IMG/VR virus record: IMGVR_UViG_3300028384_001500 | Span: 124,001 to 188,000 of that record | Length of the DNA stretch: 64,000 bases | Reading direction: 5' to 3' (one strand) | Shown: piece by piece, positions 10,303-26,959 of the stretch | Numbering within the stretch: the stretch's first letter is position 1 | Layout of the letters: each line of letters opens with the position of its first letter | The notes under the pieces: generated by a model | What the model was told of the DNA's origin: nothing | What the model saw: only the letters and a program-made list of their open reading frames with translations | The model's database searches: none | Program-made: the position numbers and the translations under genes

Positions 10303-11451
10303 CTAGAAAATTGTAATTACTTTACCGTTAGGTATTGGTACGTACTTAAGTTGTTTTTGTATTTGTTCTGCCCTTGTTGCTTGTGTTTCAATAAGCTTGT
10401 CATAAGTCATACTGTCTAGCATTTCTCTTAACTTATCTTTAAGTCCATCTCTATCAGACCTCCCGTTGCTAATCAAATCAGAACTATTTAAAGAAACATC
10501 AGAATTAGGTACAGGAATGCTTCCAAATTTACCCCTAATATAACCTAACTGCTCCATTGAAATAGCTAGCGTGTAACTTCTAATCCACTGGCGACCTATG
10601 CTATTAATGCGGTTATACTTGACATTGCCAAAAGGAAGATTACTCATATTTGATACACCGTGAACTGTATCATCGCGATAAGCAGGTGATGTTGGATCTG
10701 GGTACTGTCTAATTCTTAAGAATAATTTAGATTCTGTTGTAGGAATAGGATAAATTCTAAAATTTGTCCCCATAACTTTGTAAGAAAAATTAGATCTTCG
10801 CACTCTATTTGAAAGGTCTAGTTGCCCACCACGCAAAAGATCTTCGTATACAGGAAGAATATAAAAGACTGTTTCAGGTGTAAAAGACTCAAAGCTAAAC
10901 TCGTTATTAAGGTAATTAATTGCTGATGTTGTGTCAAAAAATCTGTATGCTGCTTGAGGATTATAGTGAAACACTTCTTCAATTTTAATCTTTCCTTTTG
11001 TATTGTCAAAAAGAAGTCCATTAGCCCCACTTAACTCTGTGTAAATATTGTAGTCTTGTCTTCCTACTTCTAGCTGTATCGATCCTGATAAAGAATTATA
11101 AGACCCACCAATTCCAGCTTCCATAGCATAAGGTTCAGCAAAACGACCTAGAAACTCTAGATTTTCTCTAATAAATTTTTCTTCGCCACCAGTCATGCTA
11201 CCTGTAGAAAAACCTAGATAACTAACTAATTGTGACTTAGCTTGATATTGGTTTAATATAGAACTATATTCTAAAGTTGCTTCTTCAAAGTTACCCCATA
11301 TCTGCTTTTTAGTAAGTTCAACTGATAATATATCATCACCTAACTTTCTTTTTACAAAGGTAACAATATTATCAGCTTCGGTAGAAAAATCAGATTCACT
11401 ATCGTATATACCAAAGGGTGTAGGATTAGATGTATTTTCAAAATTTGCCAC
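10303..11451 (-). CDS. Neck / head-tail adaptor protein (gp13-like)
   Basis: RKLG..VELT..Q, WIRSYTLA...LGYIRGKF; GTG start preceded by GAGG. Confidence 0.8.
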   Translation of the reverse strand: MANFENTSNPTPFGIYDSESDFSTEADNIVTFVKRKLGDDILSVELTKKQIWGNFEEATLEYSSILNQYQAKSQLVSYLGFSTGSMTGGEEKFIRENLEFLGRFAEPYAMEAGIGGSYNSLSGSIQLEVGRQDYNIYTELSGANGLLFDNTKGKIKIEEVFHYNPQAAYRFFDTTSAINYLNNEFSFESFTPETVFYILPVYEDLLRGGQLDLSNRVRRSNFSYKVMGTNFRIYPIPTTESKLFLRIRQYPDPTSPAYRDDTVHGVSNMSNLPFGNVKYNRINSIGRQWIRSYTLAISMEQLGYIRGKFGSIPVPNSDVSLNSSDLISNGRSDRDGLKDKLREMLDSMTYDKLIETQATRAEQIQKQLKYVPIPNGKVITIF

Positions 11452-11513: not shown

Positions 11514-11807
11514 TTATTGGTTGTCGTAGGCACCAGCCATGATATCTTGACAGCATTCCATGATAATTCTTTTTGTAATTGGGCACTCACAACATTCAAC
11601 TAAACACATAATTGCTGCACAACAGTCTTCACGTGAAACACAATTTTTTGTTGACTTCGTCATTGAATAGTTGTGACCCATGTCTGGTCTTGAATCTGGA
11701 AATCCCACAGGATTCATCCCGCCATGACCCATATTAGTCATACCCATCATTTTGAATTCTTTTAAAATCATTTTTCTAATATTAGAGCGATTAATATTTT
11801 TTTCCAT
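11514..11807 (-). CDS. Small Cys/Met-rich protein with a leader-like N terminus
   Basis: NRSNIRKMILKE N terminus; 9 Cys in the C-terminal half (CC, CCEC, CC); AAGGA RBS. Confidence 0.7.
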   Translation of the reverse strand: MEKNINRSNIRKMILKEFKMMGMTNMGHGGMNPVGFPDSRPDMGHNYSMTKSTKNCVSREDCCAAIMCLVECCECPITKRIIMECCQDIMAGAYDNQ

Positions 11808-11837
11808 GGTACATCCTTTTATTTCTATTATATATAT

Positions 11838-12242
11838 CTACTTATTTTTATATTTTCTTTTTGAATGCAACAGATCTTCTTCATGCCCGTCAACACCGTG
11901 TGACTCATGTGCTTCACCTAAATCATCGCTGTCTTTTACTTTCTCTAGTAAAATTGCAGGTATGTCAGTCTCAATTCCAATGCTAGGCCATTTTACATCA
12001 TATATTGCTATATGACCGCTTTCGTCCAGGCTGTGCCAGAGCACCTTTCCTATTTCATTTAAAGCAGAATCCTTCCGCTTAACATGAGTTAGTCATGTAT
12101 GGCCAATAATGTCATCAGCTGACTTGTCTCTTTTGGTTACATGGTCTAATCCGTAAGAGAACCCTTGTTCTTTACTAGCATAAGAAAGCCTATCTAATTC
12201 TTCTTTAATCAAACTTTTTAATTGGTTTTTTGTTAATTTCAT
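11838..12242 (-). CDS. Candidate selenoprotein, 134 aa, UGA at codon 50 (12093..12095) read as Sec
   Basis: ATG at 12242 overlaps the upstream stop (ATGA). Reads MKLTKNQLKSLIKEE...IIGHT-UGA-LTHVKRKDSALNEIGKVLWHSLDESGHIAIYDVKW..., in frame with track ORF 11838..12044. SECIS-like hairpin follows the UGA. Confidence 0.75.
12056..12086 (-). promoter_or_regulatory. Putative bacterial-type SECIS element
   Basis: CAUGUUAAGCGGAA-GGA-UUCUGCUUUAAAUG: 8-bp upper stem, bulged U, lower stem; G-starting apical loop begins 20 nt after the UGA. Confidence 0.7.
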
Positions 12243-12574
12243 TTTTTAGGCCCACCTTCTGTATATCCTGTGCAACTATTTGTTGCTTTACAAGAAAAGC
12301 CAAATGCGTGACAAAAAGCTGATGATTTATTCTTTGCAGTTACACCCGCCTCAATAGCTTCTTTTGATATATCATATGCAGCACAAGTTTTACAATATTT
12401 AACTTTGCCAAATTTATCTTCTAAAAACTCTTTTAAATCTTTGCGTTTTTTAGGATTACCGTATTTAGCATTTTTAATTGCTTTTTGTTTTCCGCCTTTG
12501 ACTTTCTTAAATGCATTGGCTTTTTTAGCAGCTTCTCTAATTAAATATTTTAGCTGCCCTAATGTAATTCTCAT
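12239..12574 (-). CDS. Leader-bearing small protein with a Cys cluster (HiPIP-like spacing)
   Basis: MRITLGQLKYLIRE leader; CKTC...FCHAFGFSCKATNSC. Confidence 0.75.
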   Translation of the reverse strand: MRITLGQLKYLIREAAKKANAFKKVKGGKQKAIKNAKYGNPKKRKDLKEFLEDKFGKVKYCKTCAAYDISKEAIEAGVTAKNKSSAFCHAFGFSCKATNSCTGYTEGGPKK

Positions 12575-13863
12575 TTTTTCTTTCTCATTCTTTTTGTTTT
12601 CTTTTTGCTAGCTTCTTTACGCTTTTTTGCATACTCGTATGCTTTTTTAAGACGCTTTTTCGTAGCAGGATCTTTTGCATTTTTATACGCAGCTCGTACA
12701 CGCTGGTGTATAAGATTAATTATCTGTGACTGTCGCTTATGACTTTTAGATTTAAAACTTTTTTTAGATAGCGTTTTTTTAATATCAGAAGCGGTTTTAA
12801 ATTTTACAGACACAGTATCCTTAGGATTTTCGTCTGTGTAGAGTCTTCTTCCACTACCTTTAGGTTTTTTACCTGTACCTACCTTTGGATCTTTTTTTTT
12901 TGACTCGCGCAAGTTTTCTTTTTTTGCTTTTTCTCGATTATAGGCTTCTATTTCTTCCGGGGTAGGTGAATTATTAAATGCATCTACAAAGTCAGATCTT
13001 CTGGTGCCTTGTATTCGATAATCGTCAAAATATACATTGTCTGTCCTAGATGTAAGCATGTTCCACACTTCTGCCATGGATTGTATACCTCTTTTTCGCC
13101 AAGAACTGGTTGTTCCAAAAGGATTGCGTGCCATGGCAGCAGCAGACTCAGGTGAAACTCCATTATAAAAGACGTCGTCAAGAACACCTTCCTCGTGGTA
13201 TAATTCTGAATAACAATCGTCATCCGGATCAGGTGTTAGGCCAAAAAAGTCCATTTCGTCACTTCCTTTCGCTGTGGTCTGCTTATAATACACACCTTGA
13301 TTCTCAGGAGCATTAACTTTAGAGTCAATAATGTTATTAATGACATCAGTGTTTCCACCTTCAAAGTCAGTTGTTATACCAGCTGGTGCAATTGGTGCGA
13401 CAACCTCACAATAATAAAAAATCAGGTCAAACATTAGATCGCCAATACCTCTGTTTTGGGCATTTACAGAAGTATAAATTGAACTAACTGAATATGTATT
13501 TGGTATACATTTAGCATCATGCCAGTATCTTACTTCTCCGTCTTCGTCTGCACCAACGGCGTCTTCTTCAACGCCCGGGCCTAATTTTCTTATGTAATGT
13601 ATTCTTTGATCGACGACTTCGTCATCTAATACTTTTAAAGGGTGTCCTTGCAATTGTCCTGTCAACTTAGTTAAGGTCGCTGACGCAATCAAGTCCCCTC
13701 CGTTAAAAAGGTCAAGTATTGTGATCTCTTCGTTGCCGTCATCTAAAGTTTCTTGATATCTTAAAGATAGACTAGGTAACGCTGCTAGTAGACTGTCATG
13801 TTGAGTAGTCTCAAGTATTATCTTTCTGATTGATTCTCTGATAAGTTTTCTTAATAAATTCAT
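12571..13863 (-). CDS. Leader-bearing protein with a GNAT-like domain and a basic C-terminal domain
   Basis: MNLLRKLIRE; VSSIYTSVNAQNRGIGDLMF resembles GNAT motif A (QxxGxG); Lys-rich tail GTGKKPKGSGRRLYTDENPKDTV after an internal LRE. Confidence 0.6.
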   Translation of the reverse strand: MNLLRKLIRESIRKIILETTQHDSLLAALPSLSLRYQETLDDGNEEITILDLFNGGDLIASATLTKLTGQLQGHPLKVLDDEVVDQRIHYIRKLGPGVEEDAVGADEDGEVRYWHDAKCIPNTYSVSSIYTSVNAQNRGIGDLMFDLIFYYCEVVAPIAPAGITTDFEGGNTDVINNIIDSKVNAPENQGVYYKQTTAKGSDEMDFFGLTPDPDDDCYSELYHEEGVLDDVFYNGVSPESAAAMARNPFGTTSSWRKRGIQSMAEVWNMLTSRTDNVYFDDYRIQGTRRSDFVDAFNNSPTPEEIEAYNREKAKKENLRESKKKDPKVGTGKKPKGSGRRLYTDENPKDTVSVKFKTASDIKKTLSKKSFKSKSHKRQSQIINLIHQRVRAAYKNAKDPATKKRLKKAYEYAKKRKEASKKKTKRMRKKK

Positions 13864-14032
13864 TAAAACGTCTCACGCGTGTTTTTACTATTCCTTTATA
13901 TATATCAAAGTACATATGCAAAATAAAAAGAAATACTAGTAGAAAGAATAAGTCCAACGGGAACATGTAATCATCCCATAATTTTTGCAATCTTTTTTTA
14001 ATGCCCATATTTTTATGTATACATTCTATACT

Positions 14033-14061
14033 AAAAAAGACGCCTCGAAAGACGTCTTTTT
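14033..14061 (-). terminator. Intrinsic terminator with UUCG loop
   Basis: AGACGTCT-TTCG-AGGCGTCT-TTTTT. Confidence 0.8.
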
Positions 14062-14081
14062 AATAAAACTTAAATTAGCTA

Positions 14082-14345
14082 TTAGGTTTGGCCACCTACT
14101 TCAGTACCATCACTATCTTGTGTTGGAACTGCATTATGTCTTTTAAGAGTACCATCTGACTCAAAAAACAAATACCAAGTTTCTCCTGTTGGTGCTTGCA
14201 AAGAAATATAAGATGGTTTGTTTGAATCAGATCCACATTTTAAATCAATGTGTCCTGCTTCTGCTGATCCTGAGACAGCAACTTCAAAGCCACCGCCTGA
14301 TAGCTGATGTAGACCTTTTGTGTCCGTTACGAGTACTTTTGGCAT
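14082..14345 (-). CDS. Small beta-rich protein, possible virion decoration protein
   Basis: 87 aa, AAGGAG RBS, own leader and terminator. Confidence 0.6.
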   Translation of the reverse strand: MPKVLVTDTKGLHQLSGGGFEVAVSGSAEAGHIDLKCGSDSNKPSYISLQAPTGETWYLFFESDGTLKRHNAVPTQDSDGTEVGGQT

Positions 14346-14366
14346 AATCTTCTCCTTTTATAAATT

Positions 14367-14423
14367 TGTCCACAAGATTCCGACACGACGGTGGGATCGC
14401 CTTTATGCTGTGTGCCGGGCCTG
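14367..14423 (-). ncRNA. Candidate structured 5' leader RNA (possible pseudoknot)
   Basis: GC-rich island in an AT-rich intergenic region; CCGGCAC/GUGUCGG stem, inner GGCG/CGUC hairpin whose loop CCAC is complementary to downstream GUGG. Confidence 0.45.
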
Positions 14424-14433
14424 TTTATATTTA

Positions 14434-14682
14434 TTAACTAAAAATTAATTTTTCTAACATTTCTTTATATTGAGGTCGCGTCATACCTTCTGGTCGCTCT
14501 TGCGTTCTTTTTTGCAAGTACTCCAAAATTTTGTCAACCCTAGGGTCAGCTCCACTTTTTGCTTTTGCTAGTTCCTTTTTAAGAGCTGCAACTTCTTTTT
14601 GCAAAGCAGCAACTTTTTTCTCTAGGTCTGCGTGTTTATGTTCTGGTGCAGCAGATGCTGCTGTAGTTTTCTTTGCTGGCAT
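14434..14682 (-). CDS. Small coiled-coil hypothetical protein
   Basis: GGAGG RBS; heptads LEKKVAALQKEVAALKKEL. Confidence 0.75.
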   Translation of the reverse strand: MPAKKTTAASAAPEHKHADLEKKVAALQKEVAALKKELAKAKSGADPRVDKILEYLQKRTQERPEGMTRPQYKEMLEKLIFS

Positions 14683-14763
14683 GTTTTCCTCCGTTTATTT
14701 GTTATATTATAACATGTCTAGTATAAATATAAATAATAATATCTTTTTTCCAGGAGGTCATAT

Positions 14764-15102
14764 ATGAAACCCATCATCATTCAAAACAGCAAAATACCTG
14801 TTTATTTGTCAATATTTATTAGCATTGGTGCAATTACTCTGTTCCCTTTTATTATCTCACGAGATGAAATGAGCGAAACCACAATAAGACATGAATGCAT
14901 ACACATAGAACAACAACGTGAGCTCTGGGTTGTTCCTTTTTATCTACTATATGGTTTTTATTGGCTCAAAGGAAAGTTGTCAGGAATGACAAACGACGAG
15001 GCTTATATGAATATTCCGTTTGAACAAGAAGCTTATCGAAAAATGTATGACAAAGAGTATTTAAAAACAAGAAAGCGTTTTGCCTGGAAGGAGTATGTTT
15101 AA
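14764..15102 (+). CDS. Small zincin-like metalloprotein; only credible plus-strand gene
   Basis: AGGAGG RBS; AITLFPFI, RHECIH (HExxH), PFEQEAY. Confidence 0.8.
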   Translation: MKPIIIQNSKIPVYLSIFISIGAITLFPFIISRDEMSETTIRHECIHIEQQRELWVVPFYLLYGFYWLKGKLSGMTNDEAYMNIPFEQEAYRKMYDKEYLKTRKRFAWKEYV

Positions 15103-15947
15103 TAAAGTTCATCTGCCCATGATGAGTCAAATTTTGATGCAGGCATAGAGCTGTATCCTAGTTCAATTCTTAGATTGTCCATAATATTCTCTGCTTTTTT
15201 ATAAGTCTTTTCTGAATGTAGTTCGCTTTCATTATAAAGACGTTGAAGCTGATAGAGGGCGTCTAAAAGAGAGTCCGATCCATCAATATCTTTAGCTGCC
15301 ATTCTTGACGTGACGTCTATCGCTGCAGGTAAAATGCGATCAATGCTGGAAGAAAATACATCATTTGATGCATCTAAACCTACTACTTTATATTTGTTTT
15401 TTACAACTTCTTGCTTCCATATTTTTTCAAAGTTTTTCTTACCGTTAGGGCTTAACTGCGCTACTAAATCATTTGGAAATTTAAGCGCGTCTCTAGAGTT
15501 GAAACCGTTAACAAAAGTATTTAATATTTCATAAATTTTTTCTTCTGGGGAACCACCATACGGTCTTTTAAATGGTGTTGATTTGCATAGCCACATAAAT
15601 CCTGGTGAATACTCACTTGTAGGTGGTGCTGGATTAATACCTATACCGGCAATTTGAACTAGTATTTTTTCACGGCTTGACTGGTACCATAAAGTTTTTT
15701 TACCACTTTTATCTTTGCATAAAAAAGCATAATTATTATGCCAGTTTTGACGGACTAGAAAGAATTCATCAATGACTAAATACTCTCTATAATAATCTTT
15801 TATTTTTTGTCTATCTTGTAGTTCAATTTTTGCAGCTTCAGCTTCAGCTTCAAGACGTCTTGTTTTCTTACTTTTAAAGAAGTCAAAAAATCCTTCATTT
15901 AACTCTTGATATATCACCTGCCGGAGTTGTTTTTTTGTCATTAACAT
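15099..15947 (-). CDS. Leader-bearing hypothetical protein
   Basis: MLMTKKQLRQVIYQELNEG N terminus. Confidence 0.75.
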   Translation of the reverse strand: MLMTKKQLRQVIYQELNEGFFDFFKSKKTRRLEAEAEAAKIELQDRQKIKDYYREYLVIDEFFLVRQNWHNNYAFLCKDKSGKKTLWYQSSREKILVQIAGIGINPAPPTSEYSPGFMWLCKSTPFKRPYGGSPEEKIYEILNTFVNGFNSRDALKFPNDLVAQLSPNGKKNFEKIWKQEVVKNKYKVVGLDASNDVFSSSIDRILPAAIDVTSRMAAKDIDGSDSLLDALYQLQRLYNESELHSEKTYKKAENIMDNLRIELGYSSMPASKFDSSWADELY

Positions 15948-15950
15948 GTT

Positions 15951-16484
15951 TTAAATCCATTCATCGCTAAAACTATCTTCTTCAATATCAGGTGTCCATC
16001 CCGGGCTATATCTTTGAATTGCTGCGTCGTTTAATTCACCCACATATCTTCCATCGTACAAGTCTTCAACATCAATAATATGTGTAAAGGGAGCGAATCC
16101 AGGACGAGGTGTTCTTAAAAGATTAAGAACTTCACCAACTAAATCCTCGTTTTCTGGATAATGATTTTGTCCTAGAGAATTGTCAAACCTCTTTTGCTTA
16201 ACAACTAGACTTACACCGTTTGGAGATCTAGGTGGCTTAGGTATCTCTATGTGTGTTTCATAAACACTTAAGACTTCACTAAACATTTGTGCAAACTCAA
16301 GTGTGGCAAAATCAGGGTTCTGTATATACGTAAAAAGATAACCGTTTGGTCCGGGCTGTTGATATATGCTAACAGCTCGCATGCCTGGCTTTTTTAAGTG
16401 AGGTGGAAAGTTAACTGGGTATGATTCATAGCCACCAATAGACTCAAATATTAACTTTCTTAACTGTGATATTGTTATTTTCAT
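15951..16484 (-). CDS. Leader-bearing hypothetical protein
   Basis: MKITISQLRKLIFES N terminus. Confidence 0.8.
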   Translation of the reverse strand: MKITISQLRKLIFESIGGYESYPVNFPPHLKKPGMRAVSIYQQPGPNGYLFTYIQNPDFATLEFAQMFSEVLSVYETHIEIPKPPRSPNGVSLVVKQKRFDNSLGQNHYPENEDLVGEVLNLLRTPRPGFAPFTHIIDVEDLYDGRYVGELNDAAIQRYSPGWTPDIEEDSFSDEWI

Positions 16485-16493
16485 TGGAATCTC

Positions 16494-17888
16494 TCAAGTA
16501 AGTTGCATGTATTGCTCAAATTTTGGTCTTAAAGAATGTACAGGATTCATACCTATTTCTGCTTTAAAGGCTCCATTCTTCCATTTTTTAATTTCTATTT
16601 TTTCTAAACTAAAATATTCTTTAAATATACCGTACCTTTTAATAGCGTATCTAAACCATAATCCAACTAGTTTATTGCATAATTCATTATGTCTGTCTAG
16701 CAAGCTTTGCAAGTCTATTCCAATTTTTTGCAAACTATATGCATCTTCATACATTGCTTTAATTTGATCCTGTCCTTGCTTTTTAATTTTGTTAATACTT
16801 TCTTGACATCTATTGTAAAAGTGATTAATAACACTGGACTTTCTTTTAAAAGATATATCTTTTTTTGTCATATTTTTGTAACTTGCCTTTTCATGTTTAT
16901 TAGTGGTACTTGATCGAATACGTGCAACTCTCATCATTCCCACTACCCATGCTTCTATTTCTATCTTAGTAAAATAATAATATACTAAAAAGAGTGGTGG
17001 ATTACGATACTTATTATATGAATCAAATATCACAGGAGATAATCTTAAAAAATCTTCTGCCAAATAACCTAGCTGGTCTTTGATTGGCGAAATTCTTTTT
17101 ATACTTTTTACAAAATCATTAGTTTTTTTCAAAAAATCACGATCGTGAAGTTCTCCCATTTTGTCAACCACTAGCATTTCTCGTTTAGTTTTTAAATAAA
17201 ACGACTTGACCAGACTAGAATACTTCATTAATCCTTCACTCTCATCATATTGCCTATCAAGATAACTTATTTCGCTAGCCTCGGGAGCGTCTCTTAAATC
17301 AACTTTATTAAACTCATTAGATTGCTTAAAGTGATGTATTTCATGAAAAGCAGTTGATTGGAATTGTTCAATTACTTCATTAATACCACCGTAATTGTTT
17401 CTTTCTCTGTCATCAAAGGCTGCAAAACCTGGATGTATTCCAAGCGTCAAAGTTAATGTATTGTCGTAAGGGTTGTATCCACCACCACCCGGGAAGAACT
17501 TAAGACCTTCTAAAAAACCCGCGCTGTTATATCCTGAATAACGAATCTTAATTTTTAAGCCATCAAGTTTGTTTATAGATGAATTCTTATTCAGTGTTTT
17601 CTTTTTTGCGTTCTCTAATATTTCTTCACTTTCTTCTGATAGTTCTGAAAAAGCGTTTTTAATATCGTCAGTTACTTTTTTGTAATTTCCGCTATCTAGA
17701 TTACTCTCCAACCAAAAGTCTGTCGATTTTACATTTTTATTTAATGATTCTATTTTTTTAATTTTTTCTACTATCGCATTGATAGTTTCCCGGACAAGTA
17801 TTCCAGTACCTTGAGCGTCTCTCCTGGAAGCTTCTTTTAAAACAGATTTACATATTAATTTTCTCAATTTACTTCTTGTAATTTTCAT
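16494..17888 (-). CDS. Leader-bearing zincin-like metallopeptidase
   Basis: MKITRSKLRKLI..LKE; GGGYNP, FHEIHHFKQ, downstream YYFTKIEIEAW (third-ligand Glu). Confidence 0.65.
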   Translation of the reverse strand: MKITRSKLRKLICKSVLKEASRRDAQGTGILVRETINAIVEKIKKIESLNKNVKSTDFWLESNLDSGNYKKVTDDIKNAFSELSEESEEILENAKKKTLNKNSSINKLDGLKIKIRYSGYNSAGFLEGLKFFPGGGGYNPYDNTLTLTLGIHPGFAAFDDRERNNYGGINEVIEQFQSTAFHEIHHFKQSNEFNKVDLRDAPEASEISYLDRQYDESEGLMKYSSLVKSFYLKTKREMLVVDKMGELHDRDFLKKTNDFVKSIKRISPIKDQLGYLAEDFLRLSPVIFDSYNKYRNPPLFLVYYYFTKIEIEAWVVGMMRVARIRSSTTNKHEKASYKNMTKKDISFKRKSSVINHFYNRCQESINKIKKQGQDQIKAMYEDAYSLQKIGIDLQSLLDRHNELCNKLVGLWFRYAIKRYGIFKEYFSLEKIEIKKWKNGAFKAEIGMNPVHSLRPKFEQYMQLT

Positions 17889-18697
17889 TAGTAGGCCCCT
17901 TCTACACCACCGTCAATTATAACAAACCGGCCATCTTCTAGGCTTCTTCCAATATTTCCGTAACCTAGATCATTAATGTCATTTTCACTCATAACGTGCA
18001 ATAATAATTGCATGTCCGGGCAATTAAGAATTAAACTTTTTATACTTTCCAACCCTATACTTTCAAGCATACCAGTAACATGAGAATTATTAGCAAACAT
18101 ATAATTAGTCACTGTATTTAACCCATCATTAACAATTTCTTCAATTGTCCAATCGTCATAATTTATATCGTCAGGTAGAAAGGTCATAAATATAGACCCT
18201 ATTAATGAAATATTACCGGTAGTATTGTCAGAATATCGGTTAAATTCTTGCGATAATCTTTGCATACTTTTAAAGCTGCTAATAACTGCTTCTCCTAACC
18301 CATAAGGCGTGTGGATAGGAGGTGTGTTTTCAACAATAAGCCATCTAAACTCTGGGTCATGCACATAAACCTTTGGAAATATTTTGGTATAGCGGTTAAA
18401 TAAATCTATTTCTTTTTTATTGTATTTTACACCGCTATCGTTTCCTATGTCAATGTGAGCAACTTTTGCGACTAAGCCAGGCCGTCCATTAATTTCATAG
18501 ACACCGCGATAACTACCTGCGCCAATATTATCACCAATATTTTCCTCTAGCCAGCCGGGTAATTCTGGATATAGTCTTGAGTCAGCTTTTTCAGGATTAT
18601 CCATTAAACGAGTAATAGTTGGGCCAAAATGCTTTCTTTCTCGATCTGTAAAAGACTCCCATATTAATTGCTTTAACTGACTTCTTGTTATTTTCAT
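17888..18697 (-). CDS. Leader-bearing protein-kinase-like protein
   Basis: IGAGSYRGVY (Gly loop), VAKVA (Lys), helix-C Glu, NDLGYGNIG (catalytic loop), IIDGG (DFG-like). Confidence 0.75.
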   Translation of the reverse strand: MKITRSQLKQLIWESFTDRERKHFGPTITRLMDNPEKADSRLYPELPGWLEENIGDNIGAGSYRGVYEINGRPGLVAKVAHIDIGNDSGVKYNKKEIDLFNRYTKIFPKVYVHDPEFRWLIVENTPPIHTPYGLGEAVISSFKSMQRLSQEFNRYSDNTTGNISLIGSIFMTFLPDDINYDDWTIEEIVNDGLNTVTNYMFANNSHVTGMLESIGLESIKSLILNCPDMQLLLHVMSENDINDLGYGNIGRSLEDGRFVIIDGGVEGAY

Positions 18698-19386
18698 TAG
18701 TAAAATACGCCGTGTTGATTTGCAACTTTTTCAGGTAGCTTGTTAAGTCTTTTCATGGTAGGACTAAAATCGCCTTCTTTGCCAGAAACGATATTCATAA
18801 GCCTGTAATAGCCAGGGATATTTTGTAAAGTTTCAATAACATCCCAGTATTCTGGATAATCAGACGACTTAAGTAGTTCTTTAATCTCTACATTCATTTG
18901 ATGTTCAATTTGATCAACATGCTCGGTATAGTCTGTTTTTCCACCGTAATATGGGCTACCTTTTTGAAGGGCTGTATTATCTTTATAAGAATCTCCAACT
19001 TCTATCGCATCAAATGCTTTATCCATTTCATCATGTGCATAATCTCTTAGCGCTAATTCATCTTCGGTAAATCCAAAAGGTTTAAATTCACCTTGATCAC
19101 CAACCATGTCAGCCAATTGTACACCTTGATTCATACTAGCTATTTGTTTTTCATCAAAAGACGATCGTCCACGAGAGTCTATACCGTGTTTTAATCTATC
19201 TGGGGCAAAAGATCTAAGTCTTTCATCACTCTGTGCGTCTAAAAAGTCTTTTTTTGCATCGTGAGTGTGAAAAGCTTTCATGTGAGGACTACCTGGATCG
19301 TTAGTAGTGTCAAATGCATCACCTTCTGGATTAACATAAATTGTTTCTTTGATAAGTTTTCTTAATTGCTTTCTTGTTATTTTCAT
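18697..19386 (-). CDS. Leader-bearing hypothetical protein
   Basis: True start is likely ATG 19386 (MKITRKQLRKLIKET), in ATGA overlap with the upstream stop; the track start 19464 is over-extended. Confidence 0.75.
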   Translation of the reverse strand: MKITRKQLRKLIKETIYVNPEGDAFDTTNDPGSPHMKAFHTHDAKKDFLDAQSDERLRSFAPDRLKHGIDSRGRSSFDEKQIASMNQGVQLADMVGDQGEFKPFGFTEDELALRDYAHDEMDKAFDAIEVGDSYKDNTALQKGSPYYGGKTDYTEHVDQIEHQMNVEIKELLKSSDYPEYWDVIETLQNIPGYYRLMNIVSGKEGDFSPTMKRLNKLPEKVANQHGVFY

Positions 19387-20003
19387 TGTATTTTTACTCC
19401 TAGCCAAAGGCCTTGTGCTGCTTGTCTTACATACCCTTCTAAAAGATGCGCAGGTATAACCCACTTAAGAGGTTTTTGTTCAGGCATTATTCTCATATCT
19501 ATTCTGCCGCGAGTCATTGTGATACGAGTTTCTTGCTGTTTTATATAATTAATCTGACCTCTGTCAGATACTGTAGAAGTGCTTGCAAGGGTCATGTCTG
19601 GGTTAAACAATAGCATTTGCACTACAGTTTCATGATCGTCAATTGTGATAATCGTTATAATCGTTTCAACTAACATATGATTATTTTGATTTGCACATGC
19701 CTTGGCGTCCAATAAATAATTGCAATTATCGTATGCATAATCGATTGTATCTTTATCGTATACTTTAACAATAGATTTTTGTCCTAGGCGATCCCAAGTA
19801 CCTCGATCATTTTTTATTTTTCCGTCTTTCCAGTACGTGCTGTTATAGGCATAGACAGATTTGCTGCTTAAAGTCCCTTCTGTTTCTGCAGATACATTGA
19901 CGATTTTTGGCGTTGATATATACACCTCTAGGCCGCTGTGTTCTTCTACAACAATCGTCGTTTGCGCAAATGCCATTAAAATTATCAAAGCGTATAGTAA
20001 CAT
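19383..20003 (-). CDS. Hypothetical protein with a signal-peptide-like N terminus
   Basis: MLLYALIILMAFAQ; GAGGAG RBS. Confidence 0.7.
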   Translation of the reverse strand: MLLYALIILMAFAQTTIVVEEHSGLEVYISTPKIVNVSAETEGTLSSKSVYAYNSTYWKDGKIKNDRGTWDRLGQKSIVKVYDKDTIDYAYDNCNYLLDAKACANQNNHMLVETIITIITIDDHETVVQMLLFNPDMTLASTSTVSDRGQINYIKQQETRITMTRGRIDMRIMPEQKPLKWVIPAHLLEGYVRQAAQGLWLGVKIQ

Positions 20004-20016
20004 TCATTCTCCTCAT

Positions 20017-20622
20017 TTAATATTCTTCTGAGTCTTCTTCAGGGTCAATTCCAATTGGCTCACCTTTTTTATTTAACATTTTTGGCATTCGAATGTCTCC
20101 TGATGTTAAAGCTTCAAATCCCACGTTAAATTCACTGTATCCGGATTTAATCTCAATATCAAATTCTGCAGCTGCTTGGATCGGTATCTCTGTAATTGCT
20201 CTAAATGTTGCTACGTATTCATTGTAAGGCATGCCGTAACCCTTGATACCCTTCAAGCCGTTCGAATAAGACAGATTTAATTGTTCACCTATATAATTAA
20301 ATAAGATTTGTACACGAGGAATGCTAGAAGTATTTCCTCTTTGTACGCTATAAGGGACTTTATTGTCATCTACATATTTCATTGCTAAAATTAAATCTTT
20401 TACCAGCATCCGATAGAGATCAGGTTTGTATTTAATAAGTGGGTGTATTAGCTTGATAGCATGTTCCATTATTTTGCCAAAAAATAACGCTGACAAAAAG
20501 GGTGGATAAAGTAATGCATTATATGGGGTTTGCTGCACAGACTCCGGATCCCAAGACATCAATTTAATTTGATCATATCCGTCTTCAATTACTTCAAGAC
20601 TAGAAAGCTCATCCATCGGCAA
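20017..20622 (-). CDS. Hypothetical protein, possibly the frameshifted C terminus of 20609..23044
   Basis: No clear RBS; overlaps the upstream ORF; its frame is open further upstream (QVDLAKLLIKYLPMDEL). Confidence 0.55.
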   Translation of the reverse strand: MPMDELSSLEVIEDGYDQIKLMSWDPESVQQTPYNALLYPPFLSALFFGKIMEHAIKLIHPLIKYKPDLYRMLVKDLILAMKYVDDNKVPYSVQRGNTSSIPRVQILFNYIGEQLNLSYSNGLKGIKGYGMPYNEYVATFRAITEIPIQAAAEFDIEIKSGYSEFNVGFEALTSGDIRMPKMLNKKGEPIGIDPEEDSEEY

Positions 20623-23044
20623 ATATTTTATAAGCAGCTTTGCCAGGTCTACTTGAAATACTGTTTATCATTGTTTTGTAAGATTCCTTAACGTCCTCAG
20701 GTTTATTCATGTAACGCATATAATATTGAATCTGTTCTGCAGGATCTGGTATAAAATTCATTTGTTGCACAACACCGCTATCAAGCAATTCTTTTCTAAA
20801 TGGCGTTAATATCCTGCACAATTCTGTATAGTACTTTGTAAATTCAGATATAGCTTTAGATGTACCGATATCAAAACCCGGTATTTTGGCTAGTACAGGC
20901 AACAGATCTCTAAAGACATAATTATACTGCGTGCGAGACCTTAAAAGTGCATCTGTTGCCAACTCAATTAACTCTATTGCCCTAGGAGGAAGTTCGTAAT
21001 CACCTTTAATATGACCCATTATAGGAAAGTGCATCTTAGGTAAAATTGATGCACCCATTTTTATCATATCACCGTCAATATCACTTCCGCTAAATCCATA
21101 GTCTTCTGCTTTCTCAAAAGTCTCTTCCATGATAGGTAAAAATTTATCAAGAATATATTTTTTAACTTCGACACTACTGTTTCCATGATCAAGCATGTTT
21201 TTCATGGCACTAACTAATTCCTTAAGTGCATCAGACATTTGCTTGGACTCAGGTGTAAGATAAAACCCAAATATTTCTTGGATCCTATCATTTAGAACGT
21301 CATCGAATTTACCTGCAAGTATCATTTCTTCAAATTTGCGGTGTGCAGTTCCGACTTGATAGGAACCTGATGTTAATCGCTTTAAAGACTCTGAAATTGC
21401 GGGAATTAACCATGGCAGCTTATGATTGTGAAGAATGCCTTCCATGTTGTCGGTTACTTTAGAAATAAGTAGTTCGCAAATTGATGGATTAAAAACGACA
21501 GATGAAGCGAAAAAATTGGTAAAGAGATTTAAAGATCCTCCTGTAGATCTAAATTGGGATTTTGGTACAAAATCCCACTGGGTTTGATCAGTCATTGGTG
21601 GGTCAAGAAGACCACGCATTTCATAGTCATTTTTTAGTTTTTCAATTATATTATTTCTTTTGTCTTGTGACTCTTTTGAGTGTGGATCAAAAAGAAGGTC
21701 GTCAGTTAGAGTGAGATATGCAATACTTTCTTTAACTTTTTTACTTACTTCTGCATGCGCAGAGCCGATTAGCGATATAACAATATATGGGAATATTCCT
21801 TCTGTTGCCAATTCTGACTGAGCCATTCTGCTGTCTTTAACACGCGGTACATTTCTCATGTAGATATAGTCTAAAACAGAAGAGCTAAGATGAGTACTTC
21901 TAAGAACATTCATTACAAAAGCCATTCGATGGTTTGGTTCAGCTAGTGTTGATAAATGTTCTTTAAAGACTGTTTTGTTTCTTGCACGTGCTCTCAAAGG
22001 TTTTATATCTTGCATACCTATATTTTGTTGCTGTGCCCTATCCTCTTGTGACACACTAGAACCTTCTAAGCCTCCCGGGCCTTTAACAGCAAAGTGACCT
22101 TTAATGTATCTAATTATTTTCTGAGTTGTTTCAGGACCTAAAACTTGAATAAGACTGTCTTCTGTGACGCCATGCTGATTTCCCCAGACACTGGCACCTC
22201 CTGCATTACCAGGAAGCACAATACTGTCTGGGCCTGACCCATTAAAACCAATTGAAAAATTATCATTATATACATTTGGATCATTATAACACTGGTGTTG
22301 TGGGTATAAATTCCTATTGTCGTAAGGCCTGTCAGGTTTTTGTTTGGCTACGTAGTAAAGTGTAATACCTTGTCTAGTATAAGTTTGCCAATGTCCTCCA
22401 TAAACAGTACACCATGCGTTAACACCAATTGCTTGAGCACCTGCCATTGTGTACGGTCTAAGAATATCCCAACCGTCGATTTCCATGTGTCTAATTAGAC
22501 CTAATCCTCCAGAGACGTCTTCGTTTAAGTCCCCACCAATTGCAGCATATTTTTGCGCAATTGCTTCCTCAGCTGCCAATTTAGCATTACCAGAGGAATC
22601 TTCACCTTTAGTCGCTACTCTGTCTTTGCCTACTAGTTTTTCATATGCTTTATTGTTTTTTTGTATAAAGCGAGCATCAATATCGTCAATAATCCCGATT
22701 AGTGTTTTGTAATCAGGAATATTATTAGGATCTAGGTACTCATCGGGTAACACACCTTTTTGCTGGGAGTACTTTTCATGCATAAGCACACAAAAAATAA
22801 TTTGTCCATAGCTAAAATTTTGATATAAAACAAAATTACCGGTCTCATCAGATATAAACTGCCCTATCATTTTATCTAAAAAGCGAAGATACTTGTTTTT
22901 GTTGCGTATCATATTAATCGCTTCTGCATATCCGTACTCCGGCTTATTCATTGCTGGGTATTTATCTAATATGTCTTTGGCTTTAATTTCAAGCAACAAA
23001 GCTTCAAAAATAAGTTTTCTAAAAATTCTACGTGTTAATAACAT
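20609..23044 (-). CDS. Large leader-bearing hypothetical protein
   Basis: MLLTRRIFRKLIFEALLLE; internal AWCTVYGGHWQTY..LYYV motif of a type seen in large-phage proteins. Confidence 0.75.
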   Translation of the reverse strand: MLLTRRIFRKLIFEALLLEIKAKDILDKYPAMNKPEYGYAEAINMIRNKNKYLRFLDKMIGQFISDETGNFVLYQNFSYGQIIFCVLMHEKYSQQKGVLPDEYLDPNNIPDYKTLIGIIDDIDARFIQKNNKAYEKLVGKDRVATKGEDSSGNAKLAAEEAIAQKYAAIGGDLNEDVSGGLGLIRHMEIDGWDILRPYTMAGAQAIGVNAWCTVYGGHWQTYTRQGITLYYVAKQKPDRPYDNRNLYPQHQCYNDPNVYNDNFSIGFNGSGPDSIVLPGNAGGASVWGNQHGVTEDSLIQVLGPETTQKIIRYIKGHFAVKGPGGLEGSSVSQEDRAQQQNIGMQDIKPLRARARNKTVFKEHLSTLAEPNHRMAFVMNVLRSTHLSSSVLDYIYMRNVPRVKDSRMAQSELATEGIFPYIVISLIGSAHAEVSKKVKESIAYLTLTDDLLFDPHSKESQDKRNNIIEKLKNDYEMRGLLDPPMTDQTQWDFVPKSQFRSTGGSLNLFTNFFASSVVFNPSICELLISKVTDNMEGILHNHKLPWLIPAISESLKRLTSGSYQVGTAHRKFEEMILAGKFDDVLNDRIQEIFGFYLTPESKQMSDALKELVSAMKNMLDHGNSSVEVKKYILDKFLPIMEETFEKAEDYGFSGSDIDGDMIKMGASILPKMHFPIMGHIKGDYELPPRAIELIELATDALLRSRTQYNYVFRDLLPVLAKIPGFDIGTSKAISEFTKYYTELCRILTPFRKELLDSGVVQQMNFIPDPAEQIQYYMRYMNKPEDVKESYKTMINSISSRPGKAAYKIFADG

Positions 23045-23062: not shown

Positions 23063-23091
23063 AAAAAAGGTTAGAAACCTGTTCTAACCTT
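23063..23091 (-). terminator. Intrinsic terminator
   Basis: AAGGTTAGAA-CAGGT-TTCTAACCTT-TTTT. Confidence 0.75.
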
Positions 23092-23414: not shown

Positions 23415-23446
23415 AAAAAAAGACGCCTTCCGAAGAAGACGCCTCT
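23415..23446 (-). terminator. Terminator after the major capsid gene (cUUCGg loop)
   Basis: AGGCGTCTTC-TTCG-GAAGGCGTCT-TTTTTT. Confidence 0.85.
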
Positions 23447-23468: not shown

Positions 23469-25418
23469 TTAGATTACATCCATATCCAAGCAAGTAACTG
23501 TTCCGTAGAAGTCGGCGCGAACCATTTTCTTTCCGTAACGAGTCATTACACCTTTTCTTGGTGTAAAGTCTTCTGGTGCGAAGATCGTTGGAGTTACGAT
23601 TAATGGTACGTACGGAGCATAGACGTATCCAGACTCTAAGTAAGAACCACCTTTGTAACCTACAAGGATCTTGTTGCGTGGGAAGTAAGGATCTTTGTAA
23701 ACAGTAAATCTGTTAGAAAGAGAACCAATTGCTTCAGCACCAATGTTAGAGATAGCTGCTTGACCTTGACCATCAATTTTGATAGAAGGCTTGTACAATA
23801 CAGAAGCTTCGAAGATAGTAGCAACTTCAGGCGAAACCACGATAAAGTTAGCAGAACCACGAAGTGTCTTTCTGTGAATTTCGTTTGCTACGTCGATGAT
23901 GGTTTCAACAAGAGTTTCATACCATTCACGAACTGTACCAGTGAAAGCAGGACCTGGGTTAAGTGAAGAAGTTCTAGCGATTTCTGCACCTGTTCTCTTG
24001 TTAAGGAATTTACCTGGAGAACGCGACCAGAAGAAGTTAGCACCTTTTGCTTCAACCAAGAGGTCGTTAAGGATTTCACGATCGATTTCCAATGCAATCT
24101 GCTCAGAAAGAATTTGAGTCAATTCAACTTCAGCATCCATTGAGTGATATGCATTCAAGTCTTGAGCGAGTTCTGGAGACCAGCGAGCTCTTAACTTACG
24201 AGTTGTAGCTGTAACAGCAATTGACTCGATCTTGATATCAATCTCTGGAATTACCGGTTCTGGTACAGAGTTAAAGTTAGACTCAAATGATGGAATAACT
24301 AAAGTAGTACCTTCGCCACTTGAGGTTTGATTTTGAACTGAGTCAGCAACTGGGAATGAAGCTGTTAAGTGCATTGCAGCATTTAAAACGTCAGCGTCAC
24401 CAGAAGCGCTTCCACCATCAGCGTGTTGCATCACCATCAAGATACCAGTGTTAGCAGCAGTAATGTCAGCTAATGGGTCTGGAGTAAATGTAATCGCATC
24501 ACGAGCACCAGACATAGTTCCTAACTGGTTAAGGCGTCGAACATTAAGAATATTAGTTCCGCCTTGGATAGTTGGACCAGGAACTGTGAAACCGTTAGTT
24601 GTAGTTTCAGCTGAGAAAAGAGCAACTTGCTTAACTTGAGTTGCGTCAAATCTTCTTTCAGTTGATGCATCTTCAATAACACGTGAAGCTGAAAGTACCA
24701 AGAAAGAGTACTCGTTGTCACCGTTGTTGATTCTAGTCAACAATTGTGGATCGAATTGTAGTAATTTAGCATCAGCACCGCTAGTTCCTGCTACGCCTGT
24801 AGAGCTAGCAGATTGAGCTGCACCAGTACCAAAAGAACCGATCATAGCAAGAGGATTTTCAGATTCAACCAATTTATAAGTTCCGTGAACTTTTGAGTAA
24901 GCTGTACCCACCAAATCATATTGACCACCAGTTGCATCAGAACCGGTACGAATAGACTTACCTACTGGATTATTATAGATTGAATCACCGCGTGAGTAAG
25001 TAGAAGCAACAGTATCGGTTAAGTTACCAGCTGCATCAACACCAGCATCACCACCAACGTCAGATCCGTAAGTGTAGTCTAAGTAGAAAAGAAGACCAGA
25101 TGGAAGTGACATAGGCTGGATAGATACTAATTCGTTAGCAACTAATCCACCGAATACACGACGTACGATTGGGAAAGCGATGTTAGTGAAACCATCAATG
25201 TTTGATCCACCGTTACCACCACCTAAAGTGTTTGCCTCACGAAGAACTTGTGCAGCTTGGTTTTCCATTAAGCGTGCCATGTTTTCGCGGCCGTGACCCT
25301 CAAGTCCTCTTAAAAGACCTGTGCGAGTCCATTTTTCTTGAATTCTGCTAGCTTCGGCACCTACGTGACGATCGCGAATCCCTTCAGTTAATTGATTTAA
25401 AGTAAATGATCTACTCAT
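23469..25418 (-). CDS. Major capsid protein (T4 gp23-like)
   Basis: VSIQPMSLPSGLLFYL, TRKLRARWSPELAQDLNAYH, EIDREIL, YAPYVPL, FTPRKGVMTRY. Confidence 0.97.
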   Translation of the reverse strand: MSRSFTLNQLTEGIRDRHVGAEASRIQEKWTRTGLLRGLEGHGRENMARLMENQAAQVLREANTLGGGNGGSNIDGFTNIAFPIVRRVFGGLVANELVSIQPMSLPSGLLFYLDYTYGSDVGGDAGVDAAGNLTDTVASTYSRGDSIYNNPVGKSIRTGSDATGGQYDLVGTAYSKVHGTYKLVESENPLAMIGSFGTGAAQSASSTGVAGTSGADAKLLQFDPQLLTRINNGDNEYSFLVLSASRVIEDASTERRFDATQVKQVALFSAETTTNGFTVPGPTIQGGTNILNVRRLNQLGTMSGARDAITFTPDPLADITAANTGILMVMQHADGGSASGDADVLNAAMHLTASFPVADSVQNQTSSGEGTTLVIPSFESNFNSVPEPVIPEIDIKIESIAVTATTRKLRARWSPELAQDLNAYHSMDAEVELTQILSEQIALEIDREILNDLLVEAKGANFFWSRSPGKFLNKRTGAEIARTSSLNPGPAFTGTVREWYETLVETIIDVANEIHRKTLRGSANFIVVSPEVATIFEASVLYKPSIKIDGQGQAAISNIGAEAIGSLSNRFTVYKDPYFPRNKILVGYKGGSYLESGYVYAPYVPLIVTPTIFAPEDFTPRKGVMTRYGKKMVRADFYGTVTCLDMDVI

Positions 25419-26919: not shown

Positions 26920-26959
26920 AAGATTAACCTCTGTATGCAATTAATTATTACGATATTTT

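Follow-up and report, generated by a model that had tools for sequence, protein, structure and literature searches.

Ten minus-strand genes at positions 11514-23044 of the window (the whole 64,000-nucleotide stretch of DNA that was analysed) open with the sequence MK(I/L)TxxQL(R/K)xLIxE or a near variant. We propose, with a probability of roughly 0.7, that this shared N-terminus is a capsid-targeting propeptide of the T4 type and that the mature cargo proteins would be delivered into the next host. The genome is that of a distant T4-like jumbo phage, present as a 236.6-kb metagenome contig, and its T4-type genes include those for a gp23-like capsid protein, a gp20-like portal, a Peptidase_S77 prohead protease and a terminase.

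An array of leader-bearing genes

The ten array leaders listed in the sequence-only reading are all present, at the minus-strand starts 11807, 12242, 12574, 13863, 15947, 16484, 17888, 18697, 19386 and 23044. The location that it gave, between the capsid and neck genes, also holds. The array is bounded by the major capsid gene (23469-25418) and by a T4 gp13-like neck gene (10303-11451), whose product is 87% identical to a homologue with PF26809 (Phage_T4_gp13) in the syntenic relative L099. The following features make up the array and its boundary:

20609..23044, minus strand: candidate cargo, 811 aa; leader MLLTRRIFRKLIFE (23003-23044), then a second LLE site
20017..20622, minus strand: C-terminal piece of this large cargo protein, about 199-201 aa; other reading frame, without leader
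19383..20003, minus strand: gene of 206 aa inside the array, without leader; hydrophobic, signal-like N-terminus
18697..19386, minus strand: candidate cargo, 229 aa; leader MKITRKQLRKLIKE; mature part acidic
17888..18697, minus strand: candidate cargo, 269 aa, protein-kinase-like fold; leader MKITRSQLKQLIWE
16494..17888, minus strand: candidate cargo, 464 aa, HEIHH (HExxH) motif; leader MKITRSKLRKLICKSVLKE; first LxE ends at residue 19
15951..16484, minus strand: candidate cargo, 177 aa; leader MKITISQLRKLIFE
15099..15947, minus strand: candidate cargo, 282 aa; variant leader MLMTKKQLRQVIYQELNE; LNE ends at residue 18
14764..15102, plus strand: small HExxH gene, 112 aa, on the opposite strand inside the array, without leader
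12571..13863, minus strand: candidate cargo, 430 aa; short leader MNLLRKLIRE, GNAT-like middle part (a lead only), basic C-terminal domain
12239..12574, minus strand: candidate cargo, 111 aa; leader MRITLGQLKYLIRE; Lys-rich basic mature part, pI 9.8
12093..12242, minus strand: candidate cargo, 49 aa; leader MKLTKNQLKSLIKE
11514..11807, minus strand: candidate cargo, 97 aa; variant leader, ILKE ends at residue 17
10303..11451, minus strand: T4 gp13-like neck protein, phrog_211; array boundary

The array genes lie on the same strand within the head-to-neck block and are coupled by ATGA and TAATG overlaps. A strong terminator-like hairpin is located 3′ of the capsid gene, so that we only infer co-transcription of the array with the head genes.

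In relatives, the protein of which gene 20609-23044 encodes the N-terminal part has a length of 1,011-1,034 aa. The reading frame 20017-20622 is the C-terminal piece of this gene: its alignment covers residues ~823-1020 of the complete homologues, the junction lacks about 8 codons, and an ATG there overlaps the upstream stop codon. All 15 homologues of the large protein (22-83% identity) have the leader, with E14 and E19 invariant. An AlphaFold2 model of 20609-23044 was of medium quality (pLDDT 70) and had no meaningful match in the PDB.

The ATG of 18697-19386 overlaps the upstream stop codon (ATGA) and the JGI gene call for the source contig gives the identical 229-aa product; no homologue was found among 82 related loci. 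These loci had no homologue of 15951-16484 or 15099-15947 either, and both of these genes lacked a family match as well. An Atlas search with 16494-17888 gave zincin-like and polyvalent-protein domains, as leads only. The mature part of 11514-11807 has a high content of Met, His and Cys (9 Cys), and its homologues in L005, L017, L066/67 and L099 retain the leader; the 49-aa gene is likewise kept in relatives (the L099 copy is 90% identical). Concerning the untagged genes, the HExxH gene 14764-15102 matches phrog_15610 (E=4e-28) and is kept in relatives, inverted there too, and 19383-20003 is 88% identical to its copy in L099 and had no match in the family search.

The leader is restricted to N-termini

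A loose regular expression applied to six frames gave 14 matches, 12 of them within 33 residues of the start of a coding-strand ORF. For a profile scan, the 24 residues following each ATG were taken from all ORFs with 40 aa or more, both in the window and in the 82 related loci. At a threshold of at least 12 bits, 53 first-ATG peptides matched the leader profile vs 0 of 5,212 internal peptides; after one iteration, 108 first-ATG peptides and no internal peptide reached at least 10 bits. With a profile generated from non-window sequences only and a threshold of 8 bits, 12 first-ATG peptides of the window matched, compared with none of the 307 internal ones and 0.00 matches per shuffled replicate. 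Thus, the profile scan suggested by the sequence-only reading places the matches at N-termini, and none internally. The scan did not find the leader among tail, baseplate, portal, terminase and capsid proteins. Among the replication genes there are two N-termini with a weaker resemblance to it:

40275..40796, minus strand: possible additional member in the replication module; MAKLNRQQLKAIKE; weak match, 11.8-13.4 bits with later profiles
42126..42845, minus strand: weak leader-like N-terminus without (L/I)xE; membership doubtful

Starts 28275 and 42845 had been described as outliers. The latter is indeed a weak match, with no (L/I)xE within its first 30 residues, but 28275 is not an outlier, being the start of a conserved head-core protein that has the leader in relatives.

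The conserved leader positions are L8, K/R9, I/L11, I/V12 and E14. BLASTP with the mature parts gave no pair at E<0.01, as expected from their description as otherwise unrelated ORFs. In the single confident model, that of the kinase-fold protein, the leader is predicted to be helical; leader amphipathicity was not significantly higher than that of shuffled controls.

Head-core proteins, protease and putative cut site

The leader is also the N-terminus of conserved head-core proteins, which adds to the earlier reading. The head genes concerned are:

28873..29475, minus strand: prohead maturation protease, T4 gp21 family (Pfam Peptidase_S77, phrog_207, PDB 5jbl)
28321..28872, minus strand: conserved head-core protein, 183 aa, directly 3′ of the protease gene; diverged leader, then LLE and LAE sites
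28066..28275, minus strand: conserved small Lys-rich head-core protein, 69 aa; leader KLTPQTIKRLIKE
25456..26940, minus strand: acidic coiled-coil protein at the position of T4 gp22, conserved in 77 loci
23469..25418, minus strand: major capsid protein, gp23-like; putative maturation site VLRE, residues 58-61 (25236-25247)

Relatives of 28321-28872 read MKITKTQLKNLVKECLLEVLAEG at the N-terminus. Wherever a relative holds protease and capsid gene alike (38 cases), the stretch separating them includes one or more leader-bearing core genes; 23 of these relatives have both. With a profile of the core proteins only (at least 8 bits), none of the internal peptides of the window matched and ten first-ATG peptides did: five array cargo leaders, the two head-core proteins, the two weak replication-module N-termini and one probably spurious 49-aa ORF.

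The protease was identified with 96.4 bits to Peptidase_S77 (cut-off 27), E=4e-53 to phrog_207 and E=8e-18 to PDB 5jbl (T4 gp21), and its gene adjoins the scaffold and capsid genes. The putative scaffold, the coiled-coil protein 25456-26940, had no match in the family search.

All ten array leaders end in (I/L)xE, as had been claimed, and the site ends at residues 10-19. All 83 of the 83 leaders aligned have this Glu, and none has Asp in its place; in T4, Asp in place of that Glu retains targeting and blocks processing (PMC9026906). The capsid proteins of 82 relatives share a similar invariant site, (V/L/I)-L-(R/K)-E, and the corresponding place in T4 gp23 reads FLTE followed by AEIGG, where T4 gp23 is cut.

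Cargo turnover and alternative explanations

The interval between capsid and neck genes is a cargo hotspot. In 46 relatives it measures from 165 bp to 9 kb and contains 0-5 leader genes, vs 12 kb and ten leader genes here. L098 contains a 91%-identical copy of 16494-17888, followed by four different leader-bearing genes. The last 106 residues of 12571-13863 are 88% identical to a 129-aa protein of L066/L067, in which the basic domain comes directly after the leader without the interposed GNAT-like part, and the middle part is similar to a 262-aa leader-bearing protein of L099. Phage LR756508 (484 kb) has 20 leader ORFs, and for 15 of them the distance to the capsid gene is no more than about 50 kb.

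The AlphaFold2 model of 17888-18697 (75-sequence alignment; pLDDT 90.7, pTM 0.85) has an N-terminal helix at residues 5-24, and its best Foldseek matches in the PDB are APH(2''), MTR kinase, PRPK and B-Raf. G59, G61 and D262 are invariant, and at least 90% of the sequences have K78 and N248. Among 121 homologous cluster representatives, 26 carry the array-type leader; many others have a second leader, MKLL(L/I)ENWRKYLxE, which likewise ends in LxE. Altogether, the tests that were run (S77 protease, Glu sites, N-terminal restriction) agree with a T4-style capsid-targeting leader removed by a protease, and the cargo turnover, the kinase-fold cargo under differing leaders and the matching capsid site argue in the same direction.

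The leader might target the prohead and be cut on proteins that are structural components of the internal head and not effectors acting in the host, that is, core, inner-body or DNA-condensing proteins that remain in the capsid or merely escort the DNA. This is unlikely. The ancestral presence of the leader on core proteins fits it, as do the small size of several conserved members, the strongly basic character of two (12239-12574 and, with its Lys/Arg-rich C-terminus, 12571-13863) and the lack of a recognisable enzymatic feature in four. However, the variable members include a confident kinase fold, a GNAT-like lead and an HExxH protein, and complete turnover of structural components would be unexpected between phages with a 91%-identical neighbour gene.

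We consider it very improbable that the genes form one paralogous family, diverged except for an N-terminal helix that would serve oligomerisation, chaperone docking or regulated degradation and not capsid loading. Their adjacency and the near identity of the first six codons in four neighbours would fit, but lengths range from 49 to more than 800 aa, predicted folds differ, the same kinase-fold domain carries two different leaders, another domain is interposed in 12571-13863 where the basic domain follows the leader directly in L066, and the conserved core proteins beside the protease are tagged too.

Slightly less probable still is a conserved start that acts as nucleic acid, either as an A-rich initiation region or as a shared recombination sequence, with no role for the peptide. 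Synonymous codons for Leu, Ile, Arg, Gln and Glu differ between the leaders and no upstream DNA is shared, thus the leader is conserved as protein and not as DNA. Conservation extends to residue 14 with its invariant Glu, the capsid, portal, sheath and tube genes have no leader, and relatives with capsid proteins of only 61-78% identity retain the leader; AT-rich codons and tight gene coupling are what would speak for such a feature. Least probable is an export or membrane-targeting signal, which the N-terminal position and Met-Lys start would suit, since the leader is charged and polar without the hydrophobic core of Sec, Tat or lipoprotein signals and a hydrophobic N-terminus is found instead on the untagged gene 19383-20003.

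Proposed route of the cargo

Under the capsid-targeting reading we infer core binding, cleavage, packaging and ejection of the cargo. The array genes would be produced along with the head proteins, as block, strand and overlaps suggest. The leader of ~14 residues, predicted to be helical, would be the same peptide that heads one or two prohead-core proteins; since core proteins and cargo have it in common, the cargo may enter the scaffolding core via the assembly handle of the core proteins. After closure of the shell, the gp21-family serine protease would cut after the Glu of (I/L/V)-x-E and free the mature cargo within the head as the scaffold is degraded. The cargo would then accompany the DNA into the next host cell, where the kinase-fold, GNAT-like and HExxH proteins could act ahead of any phage gene expression; the small basic members may instead travel with the DNA or condense it.

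In phage SPN3US, 42 head proteins are packaged uncleaved (PMC10052503), and so the leader is not the sole route into the head and sequence alone cannot reveal packaging. Counting against the capsid-targeting reading, a cargo protein of 90-115 kDa would have to traverse the tail. The hairpin 3′ of the capsid gene, the two leader-like N-termini in the replication module, the unremarkable amphipathicity and the negative profile scores with T4 propeptides count against it too.

Comparison with known systems

Encapsulin cargo-loading peptides are short conserved tags that send diverse enzymes into an HK97-fold shell. The leader would resemble them in addressing diverse enzymes to a shell interior, but the encapsulin tag is usually C-terminal, is retained and binds the shell protein itself, and the encapsulin is a cellular compartment without DNA and without a delivery step. 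In phages and conjugative elements, polyvalent proteins combine kinase, zincin-like peptidase, acetyltransferase and ADP-ribosyltransferase modules that are believed to pass into the recipient cell together with the DNA. Domains of this kind are what the Atlas search suggested for 16494-17888, as leads; here they would be separate genes with one leader each, in contrast to domains within a giant protein.

The prohead protease of phiKZ-like giant phages, for example SPN3US, cuts many internal head proteins after Glu, and these are delivered to the host (PMC10052503, PMC5694885); many packaged proteins are left uncleaved (PMC10052503). Their propeptides are long and protein-specific, whereas a short tag is shared here. 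The reported phiKZ-like cleavage motif has a small residue where the leader has I or V.

The IP loci of T-even phages are hypervariable (Repoila et al., 1994; summaries in PMC3012670 and PMC9026906): according to these summaries, the cargo varies between close relatives and the targeting sequence alone is conserved. The array belongs to another phage clade, has another genomic location and is of larger scale; unlike at the T-even loci, the same junction holds from zero up to ten cargo genes in relatives.

A close parallel is the capsid-targeting sequence (CTS) of T4, also a short N-terminal propeptide ending in L/I-x-E on otherwise unrelated proteins, which occurs with a gp21-family (Peptidase_S77) protease and T4-type capsid, portal and terminase genes. 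The CTS resembles the N-terminus of scaffold gp22 (MKTYQEFIAE vs MLKEQLIAE), as the leader matches the core-protein N-termini. The leader has 14 residues vs 10 in T4, and the leader profile gave negative scores with T4 MKTYQEFIAE and other T4 head propeptides, hence no detectable homology. T4 has three small IP genes and Alt, scattered in the genome, in contrast to ten tagged genes in one 11.5-kb array between the gp23 and gp13 genes, with predicted cargo, known from sequence alone, in which large enzyme-like proteins reach about 1,000 aa. The concept is known from T4 (PMC9026906, PMC3012670), and the array appears to be a new and much expanded version of it.

Gene order of the window and its relatives

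The window (positions 124001-188000) derives from a 236,652-bp contig of the JGI metagenome 3300028384. It has a GC content of approximately 35%, every long ORF is located on the minus strand, and the genes are arranged as follows:

822-8370, baseplate hub, tail tube and two tandem tail-sheath paralogues
8426-11451, gp15-like protein and gp13-like neck protein
11514-23044, leader-gene array
23469-25418, minus strand, gp23-like major capsid protein
25456-26940, acidic protein, taken as scaffold
between putative scaffold and protease, four small proteins, including the two core proteins listed next
28066-28275, Lys-rich core protein, 70-110 aa in relatives
28321-28872, core protein of 140-180 aa directly after the protease, with MKITKTQLKNLVKECLLEVLAEG in many relatives; the window copy is diverged
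28873-29475, Peptidase_S77 prohead protease
up to 33899, 280-aa protein, gp20-like portal and large terminase subunit
34584-44383, DNA-metabolism genes
after the DNA-metabolism genes, large genes, most of them without assignment and one matching a baseplate protein, taken as baseplate or fibre genes

According to the capsid protein, the nearest named phages are the uncultured 484-kb phage LR756508 (50% identity) and Flavobacterium phage immuto (47%), together with Microcystis phage Mel-JY01 and Rhodothermus phage RM378. In IMG/VR, at least 596 contigs encode a related capsid protein, the best 80 of which are 61-78% identical. DNA nearly identical to the window was not found in the phage collection searched, and public sequencing runs contain only 5-6% of the words of the array region. 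The two tail-sheath paralogues (2232-5198 and 5221-8370, minus strand) are 988 and 1,049 aa long and each match phrog_23 with an E-value near 1e-57. The capsid protein has 649 aa, compared to 521 aa in T4 gp23. Since tblastn against named phages covered only about half of its length, the sequence suggests that it carries a large inserted region.

The leader is confined to protein N-termini

The sequence-only reading had reported ten genes sharing the N-terminal leader MK(I/L)TxxQL(R/K)xLIxE between the capsid and neck genes. All ten leaders are present at their starts, all end in (I/L)xE at residue 10-19, and the array indeed lies between the gp23-like capsid gene and the gp13-like neck gene. 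The leader has the form of a short propeptide (about 10-19 residues) at the extreme N-terminus. The array genes are joined through ATGA or TAATG overlaps, and independent gene calls on the source contig gave identical products of 229, 269 and 464 aa. Behind the leader, the mature cargo parts showed no pairwise similarity (BLASTP, no pair at E<0.01). The leader codons vary at synonymous positions and the DNA upstream of the leader genes is not shared, thus it is the peptide and not the DNA that is conserved.

A leader profile, as had been proposed in that reading, was scanned against the peptides following every ATG in the window and in the 82 related loci fetched first, and it matched N-termini only. 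At 12 bits or more it found 53 first-ATG peptides and none of 5,212 internal ones; after one iteration, 108 first-ATG peptides scored at least 10 bits, again with 0 of 5,212 internal peptides. A profile built without window sequences still gave scores of at least 8 bits to 12 N-termini of the window; it matched none of 307 internal peptides and nothing in shuffled sequences. Among 98 unique leaders the most conserved positions are L8 (91), K/R9 (88), I/L11 (88), I/V12 (92; I or V at P3) and E14 (83 of 83 aligned). The leader does not have the form of a Sec, Tat or lipoprotein signal peptide, as it has no hydrophobic core and its consensus is charged and polar throughout. In a test for an amphipathic helix, its hydrophobic moment was not significantly higher than that of shuffled controls.

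None of the tail, baseplate, portal, terminase or capsid genes of the window carries the leader. Two outliers had been noted at 28275 and 42845: the first is a conserved Lys-rich core protein with a leader, while the second is a weaker match without (L/I)xE. The latter is one of two weaker leader-like N-termini in the replication genes, the other being at 40796. This gene (40275-40796, minus strand) codes for a 173-aa replication-module protein that starts with MAKLNRQQLKAIKE and scores 11-13 bits with the leader profiles; it could be a cargo gene encoded outside the array.

The array is a hotspot of variable cargo

In 46 relatives, the capsid and gp13 genes are separated by 165 bp to 9.0 kb with zero to five leader genes, compared with 12.0 kb and ten leader genes in the window. 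The head and neck genes have conserved counterparts in 37-82 loci. For seven ORFs representing six genes (starts at 15947, 16484, 17888, 18697, 19386 and 23044/20622), no homologue was found in the 82 loci first fetched, and word-index protein searches with two cargo genes returned only the genes themselves or very close copies. Apart from the tag, the proteins are thus unrelated to each other, and the content of the locus differs from one relative to the next. The syntenic locus L099, whose capsid protein is 71% identical, shares with the window the large protein, an untagged 206-aa gene, an inverted small HExxH gene, the small genes 12242, 12044 and 11807, and a gene with a leader and a GNAT-like part, and a five-gene block of the window is replaced there by a single different leader gene. 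In another related locus, L098, the gene 16494-17888 is present at 91% identity, followed by four unrelated leader-bearing genes.

A 14-bp GC-containing hairpin with a T run (23417-23448, minus strand) directly follows the capsid gene, and a second hairpin (23067-23091, minus strand) is located just upstream of the first array gene. Because of these hairpins, the array may have a promoter of its own, or be expressed below the level of the capsid protein. No enrichment was seen for the T4 late promoter TATAAATA (3 matches, 8 expected), and scans for sigma-70 promoters and terminators gave chance levels overall.

Core proteins of the prohead share the leader

Two conserved genes between the protease and capsid genes, coding for core proteins, share the leader in relatives. 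At least one leader-bearing core gene was present in all 38 loci containing both the protease and the capsid gene, and both core genes had it in 23 of the 38. We scanned the window with a profile made from 59 core-protein N-termini of other phages only. This core-only profile gave five cargo leaders a score of at least 8 bits (12242, 23.5; 19386, 17.7; 18697, 15.6; 17888, 10.7; 13863, 8.7), with the leader at 23044 just under the threshold (7.9 bits); it also matched the two core proteins of the window and no internal peptide. A similar relation exists in T4, where the capsid targeting sequence (CTS) MKTYQEFIAE of the internal proteins resembles the N-terminus of gp22, MLKEQLIAE. Since the leader is common to the core proteins and the T4 pair offers a parallel, the sequences suggest that cargo enters the core through the core proteins' own handle. 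That the leader is the assembly handle of the prohead-core proteins and was captured by cargo genes is a tentative reading, to which we assign a probability of roughly 0.3.

Protease and predicted cleavage sites

The protease scores 96.4 bits with PF03420 (Peptidase_S77; cut-off 27) and matches the solved T4 gp21 structure (PDB 5jbl) with E=8e-18. This gp21-family protease is encoded inside a T4-type head module with a gp23-like capsid protein, a gp20-like portal and a large terminase subunit. T4 gp21 cleaves after (L/I)-x-E (PMC9026906). The capsid protein of the window has VLRE at residues 58-61, and (V/L/I)-L-(R/K)-E is invariant at this site in 82 of 82 relatives; the site is located just past a conserved ENQ, where T4 gp23 has its ..FLTE/AEIGG site. 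In 15 homologues of the large cargo protein, E14 and E19 are invariant at identities down to 22%. The leader Glu is never replaced by Asp, a replacement that in T4 allows targeting and blocks processing (PMC9026906). Cleavage of the leader after Glu by the prohead protease is predicted, with indirect support from the invariance of this Glu and of the corresponding capsid-protein site.

A second leader class

An exhaustive search with the 269-aa kinase-fold cargo protein yielded 121 cluster representatives, 26 of which have the window-type leader. Many others begin with MKLL(L/I)ENWRKYLxE or MKKILKEWRxYLxE, which likewise end in LxE. This second leader is absent from the window. On two marine contigs it was found on four (L094) and seven (L103) mostly adjacent genes, which adjoin three genes whose leader is of the first type or closely resembles it. 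The arrays (L094, 9618-12033; L103, 519-13949; L102, 8069-19324; variant MKKLFESWRxYLxE) consist of unrelated genes, lie beside a few genes with the window-type leader, and occur on marine phage contigs where PrkA/SpoVR/DUF444 genes are present as well; their tagged products include kinase-fold proteins and one weak ART-PolyVal match. The first leader type reaches the more distant LR756508.1: a scan of the entire 484 kb identified 20 ORFs at 9 bits or more and no internal control, and 15 of the 20 fall into the 143-220 kb stretch that surrounds its capsid gene (172 kb). In the cultured relative Flavobacterium phage immuto, two genes begin with a related sequence, MKKSQ(L/I)..I.E, and one of the two is located between the portal and protease genes.

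Individual array genes

The 17888-18697 product was modeled by AlphaFold2 with a pLDDT of 90.7 as a protein-kinase-like fold with an N-terminal helix (residues 5-24). Its top matches in the PDB are all kinase-fold enzymes (probability ~1), at TM-scores of only ~0.3. Within the family, G59, G61 and D262 are invariant, and 90% or more of the sequences keep K78 and N248. The modeled bilobal fold with a glycine-rich loop, conserved Lys, D..N and metal-binding Asp places the predicted protein in the protein-kinase-like superfamily. Pfam did not recognize it and gave nothing useful over 75 family members; an uncharacterised PHROG matches it. The other cargo proteins had no match in Pfam or PHROGs.

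For 12571-13863 a GNAT-like similarity is a lead only; the gene is modular, as its basic C-terminal 106 residues are found directly behind the leader in a 129-aa protein of the related loci L066 and L067. The 16494-17888 protein contains an HExxH motif, with leads to zincin-like and polyvalent-protein domains. The 811-aa product of 20609-23044 was modeled with a pLDDT of 70 and a pTM of 0.41, and Foldseek found only generic helical-repeat matches (E>0.06) and no assignable fold. This tagged gene and the 201-aa ORF that follows it (together 20017-23044, minus strand) match one protein that is 1,011-1,034 aa long in relatives. The frame changes at ~20609-20625 with about 8 codons missing, and the second piece has an ATG that overlaps the stop of the first; the gene could be truly split or decayed, or the break could come from an assembly error.

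The sole plus-strand gene of the array (14764-15102) codes for a 112-aa HExxH protein matching phrog_15610 ('protease') and is conserved, also inverted, in relatives such as L099, L017 and L067. The small conserved cargo protein 11514-11807 (minus strand) is Met/His/Gly-rich past the leader and then has 9 Cys in ~45 residues, a composition which suggests metal binding. The untagged 206-aa gene (19383-20003, minus strand) has a hydrophobic, signal-like N-terminus and is 88% identical in L099, conservation far above that of its tagged neighbours.

Comparison with T4 and significance

In T4, the CTS, its cleavage by gp21 and the polymorphism of the internal-protein loci are established (PMC3012670, PMC9026906); the principle was demonstrated there in 1996, and T4-like phages have been proposed to use it generally (PMC9026906, PMC3012670). 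In contrast to the T4 tag, the leader described here is distinct in sequence: both leader profiles score at or below 0 on T4 IPI, IPII, IPIII, gp22, gp67, gp68 and gp21. As judged from sequence, the leader is a tag that would work like the T4 CTS and lies outside that sequence family; every sequence-level feature of the T4 system except homology of the tag is found in the predicted system. We infer from the T4 precedent (PMC9026906) that the mature cargo would be ejected into the host. In the literature searched, precedents in T4 and SPN3US were found and no description of the present leader. Compared to T4, the leader is distinct and common to the core proteins, the cargo genes are clustered at the gp23-gp13 junction in a much larger array, the cargo reaches the size of enzymes, and the leader occurs widely in uncultured phages.

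If the leader is a true capsid-targeting tag, packaged proteins could be read from metagenomic sequence for a large uncultured clade; a first list would comprise the kinase-fold family (121 cluster representatives), a GNAT-like protein, an HExxH protein and the conserved ~1,000-aa protein. To our knowledge, it is only for a handful of cultured phages that the proteins which ride in the capsid and act within seconds of infection are known. A practical use would be a second packaging tag, possibly orthogonal to that of T4, for bringing foreign proteins into T4-like heads.

If cargo genes did capture the core handle, a whole uncultured, largely marine T4-like lineage, spanning at least 596 contigs in the capsid-protein search and with the leader carried also by the more distant 484-kb phage, would have an address system for injected proteins that is readable from sequence. 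The leaders would then be a bioinformatic handle to the kinases, acetyltransferases, peptidases and ADP-ribosyltransferases that uncultured phages inject, and in those phages that have the two leader classes side by side, these could load different cargo sets or amounts. The leader shared by core and cargo proteins would explain, in a concrete and testable way, how the scaffold is found by a T4-type targeting sequence.
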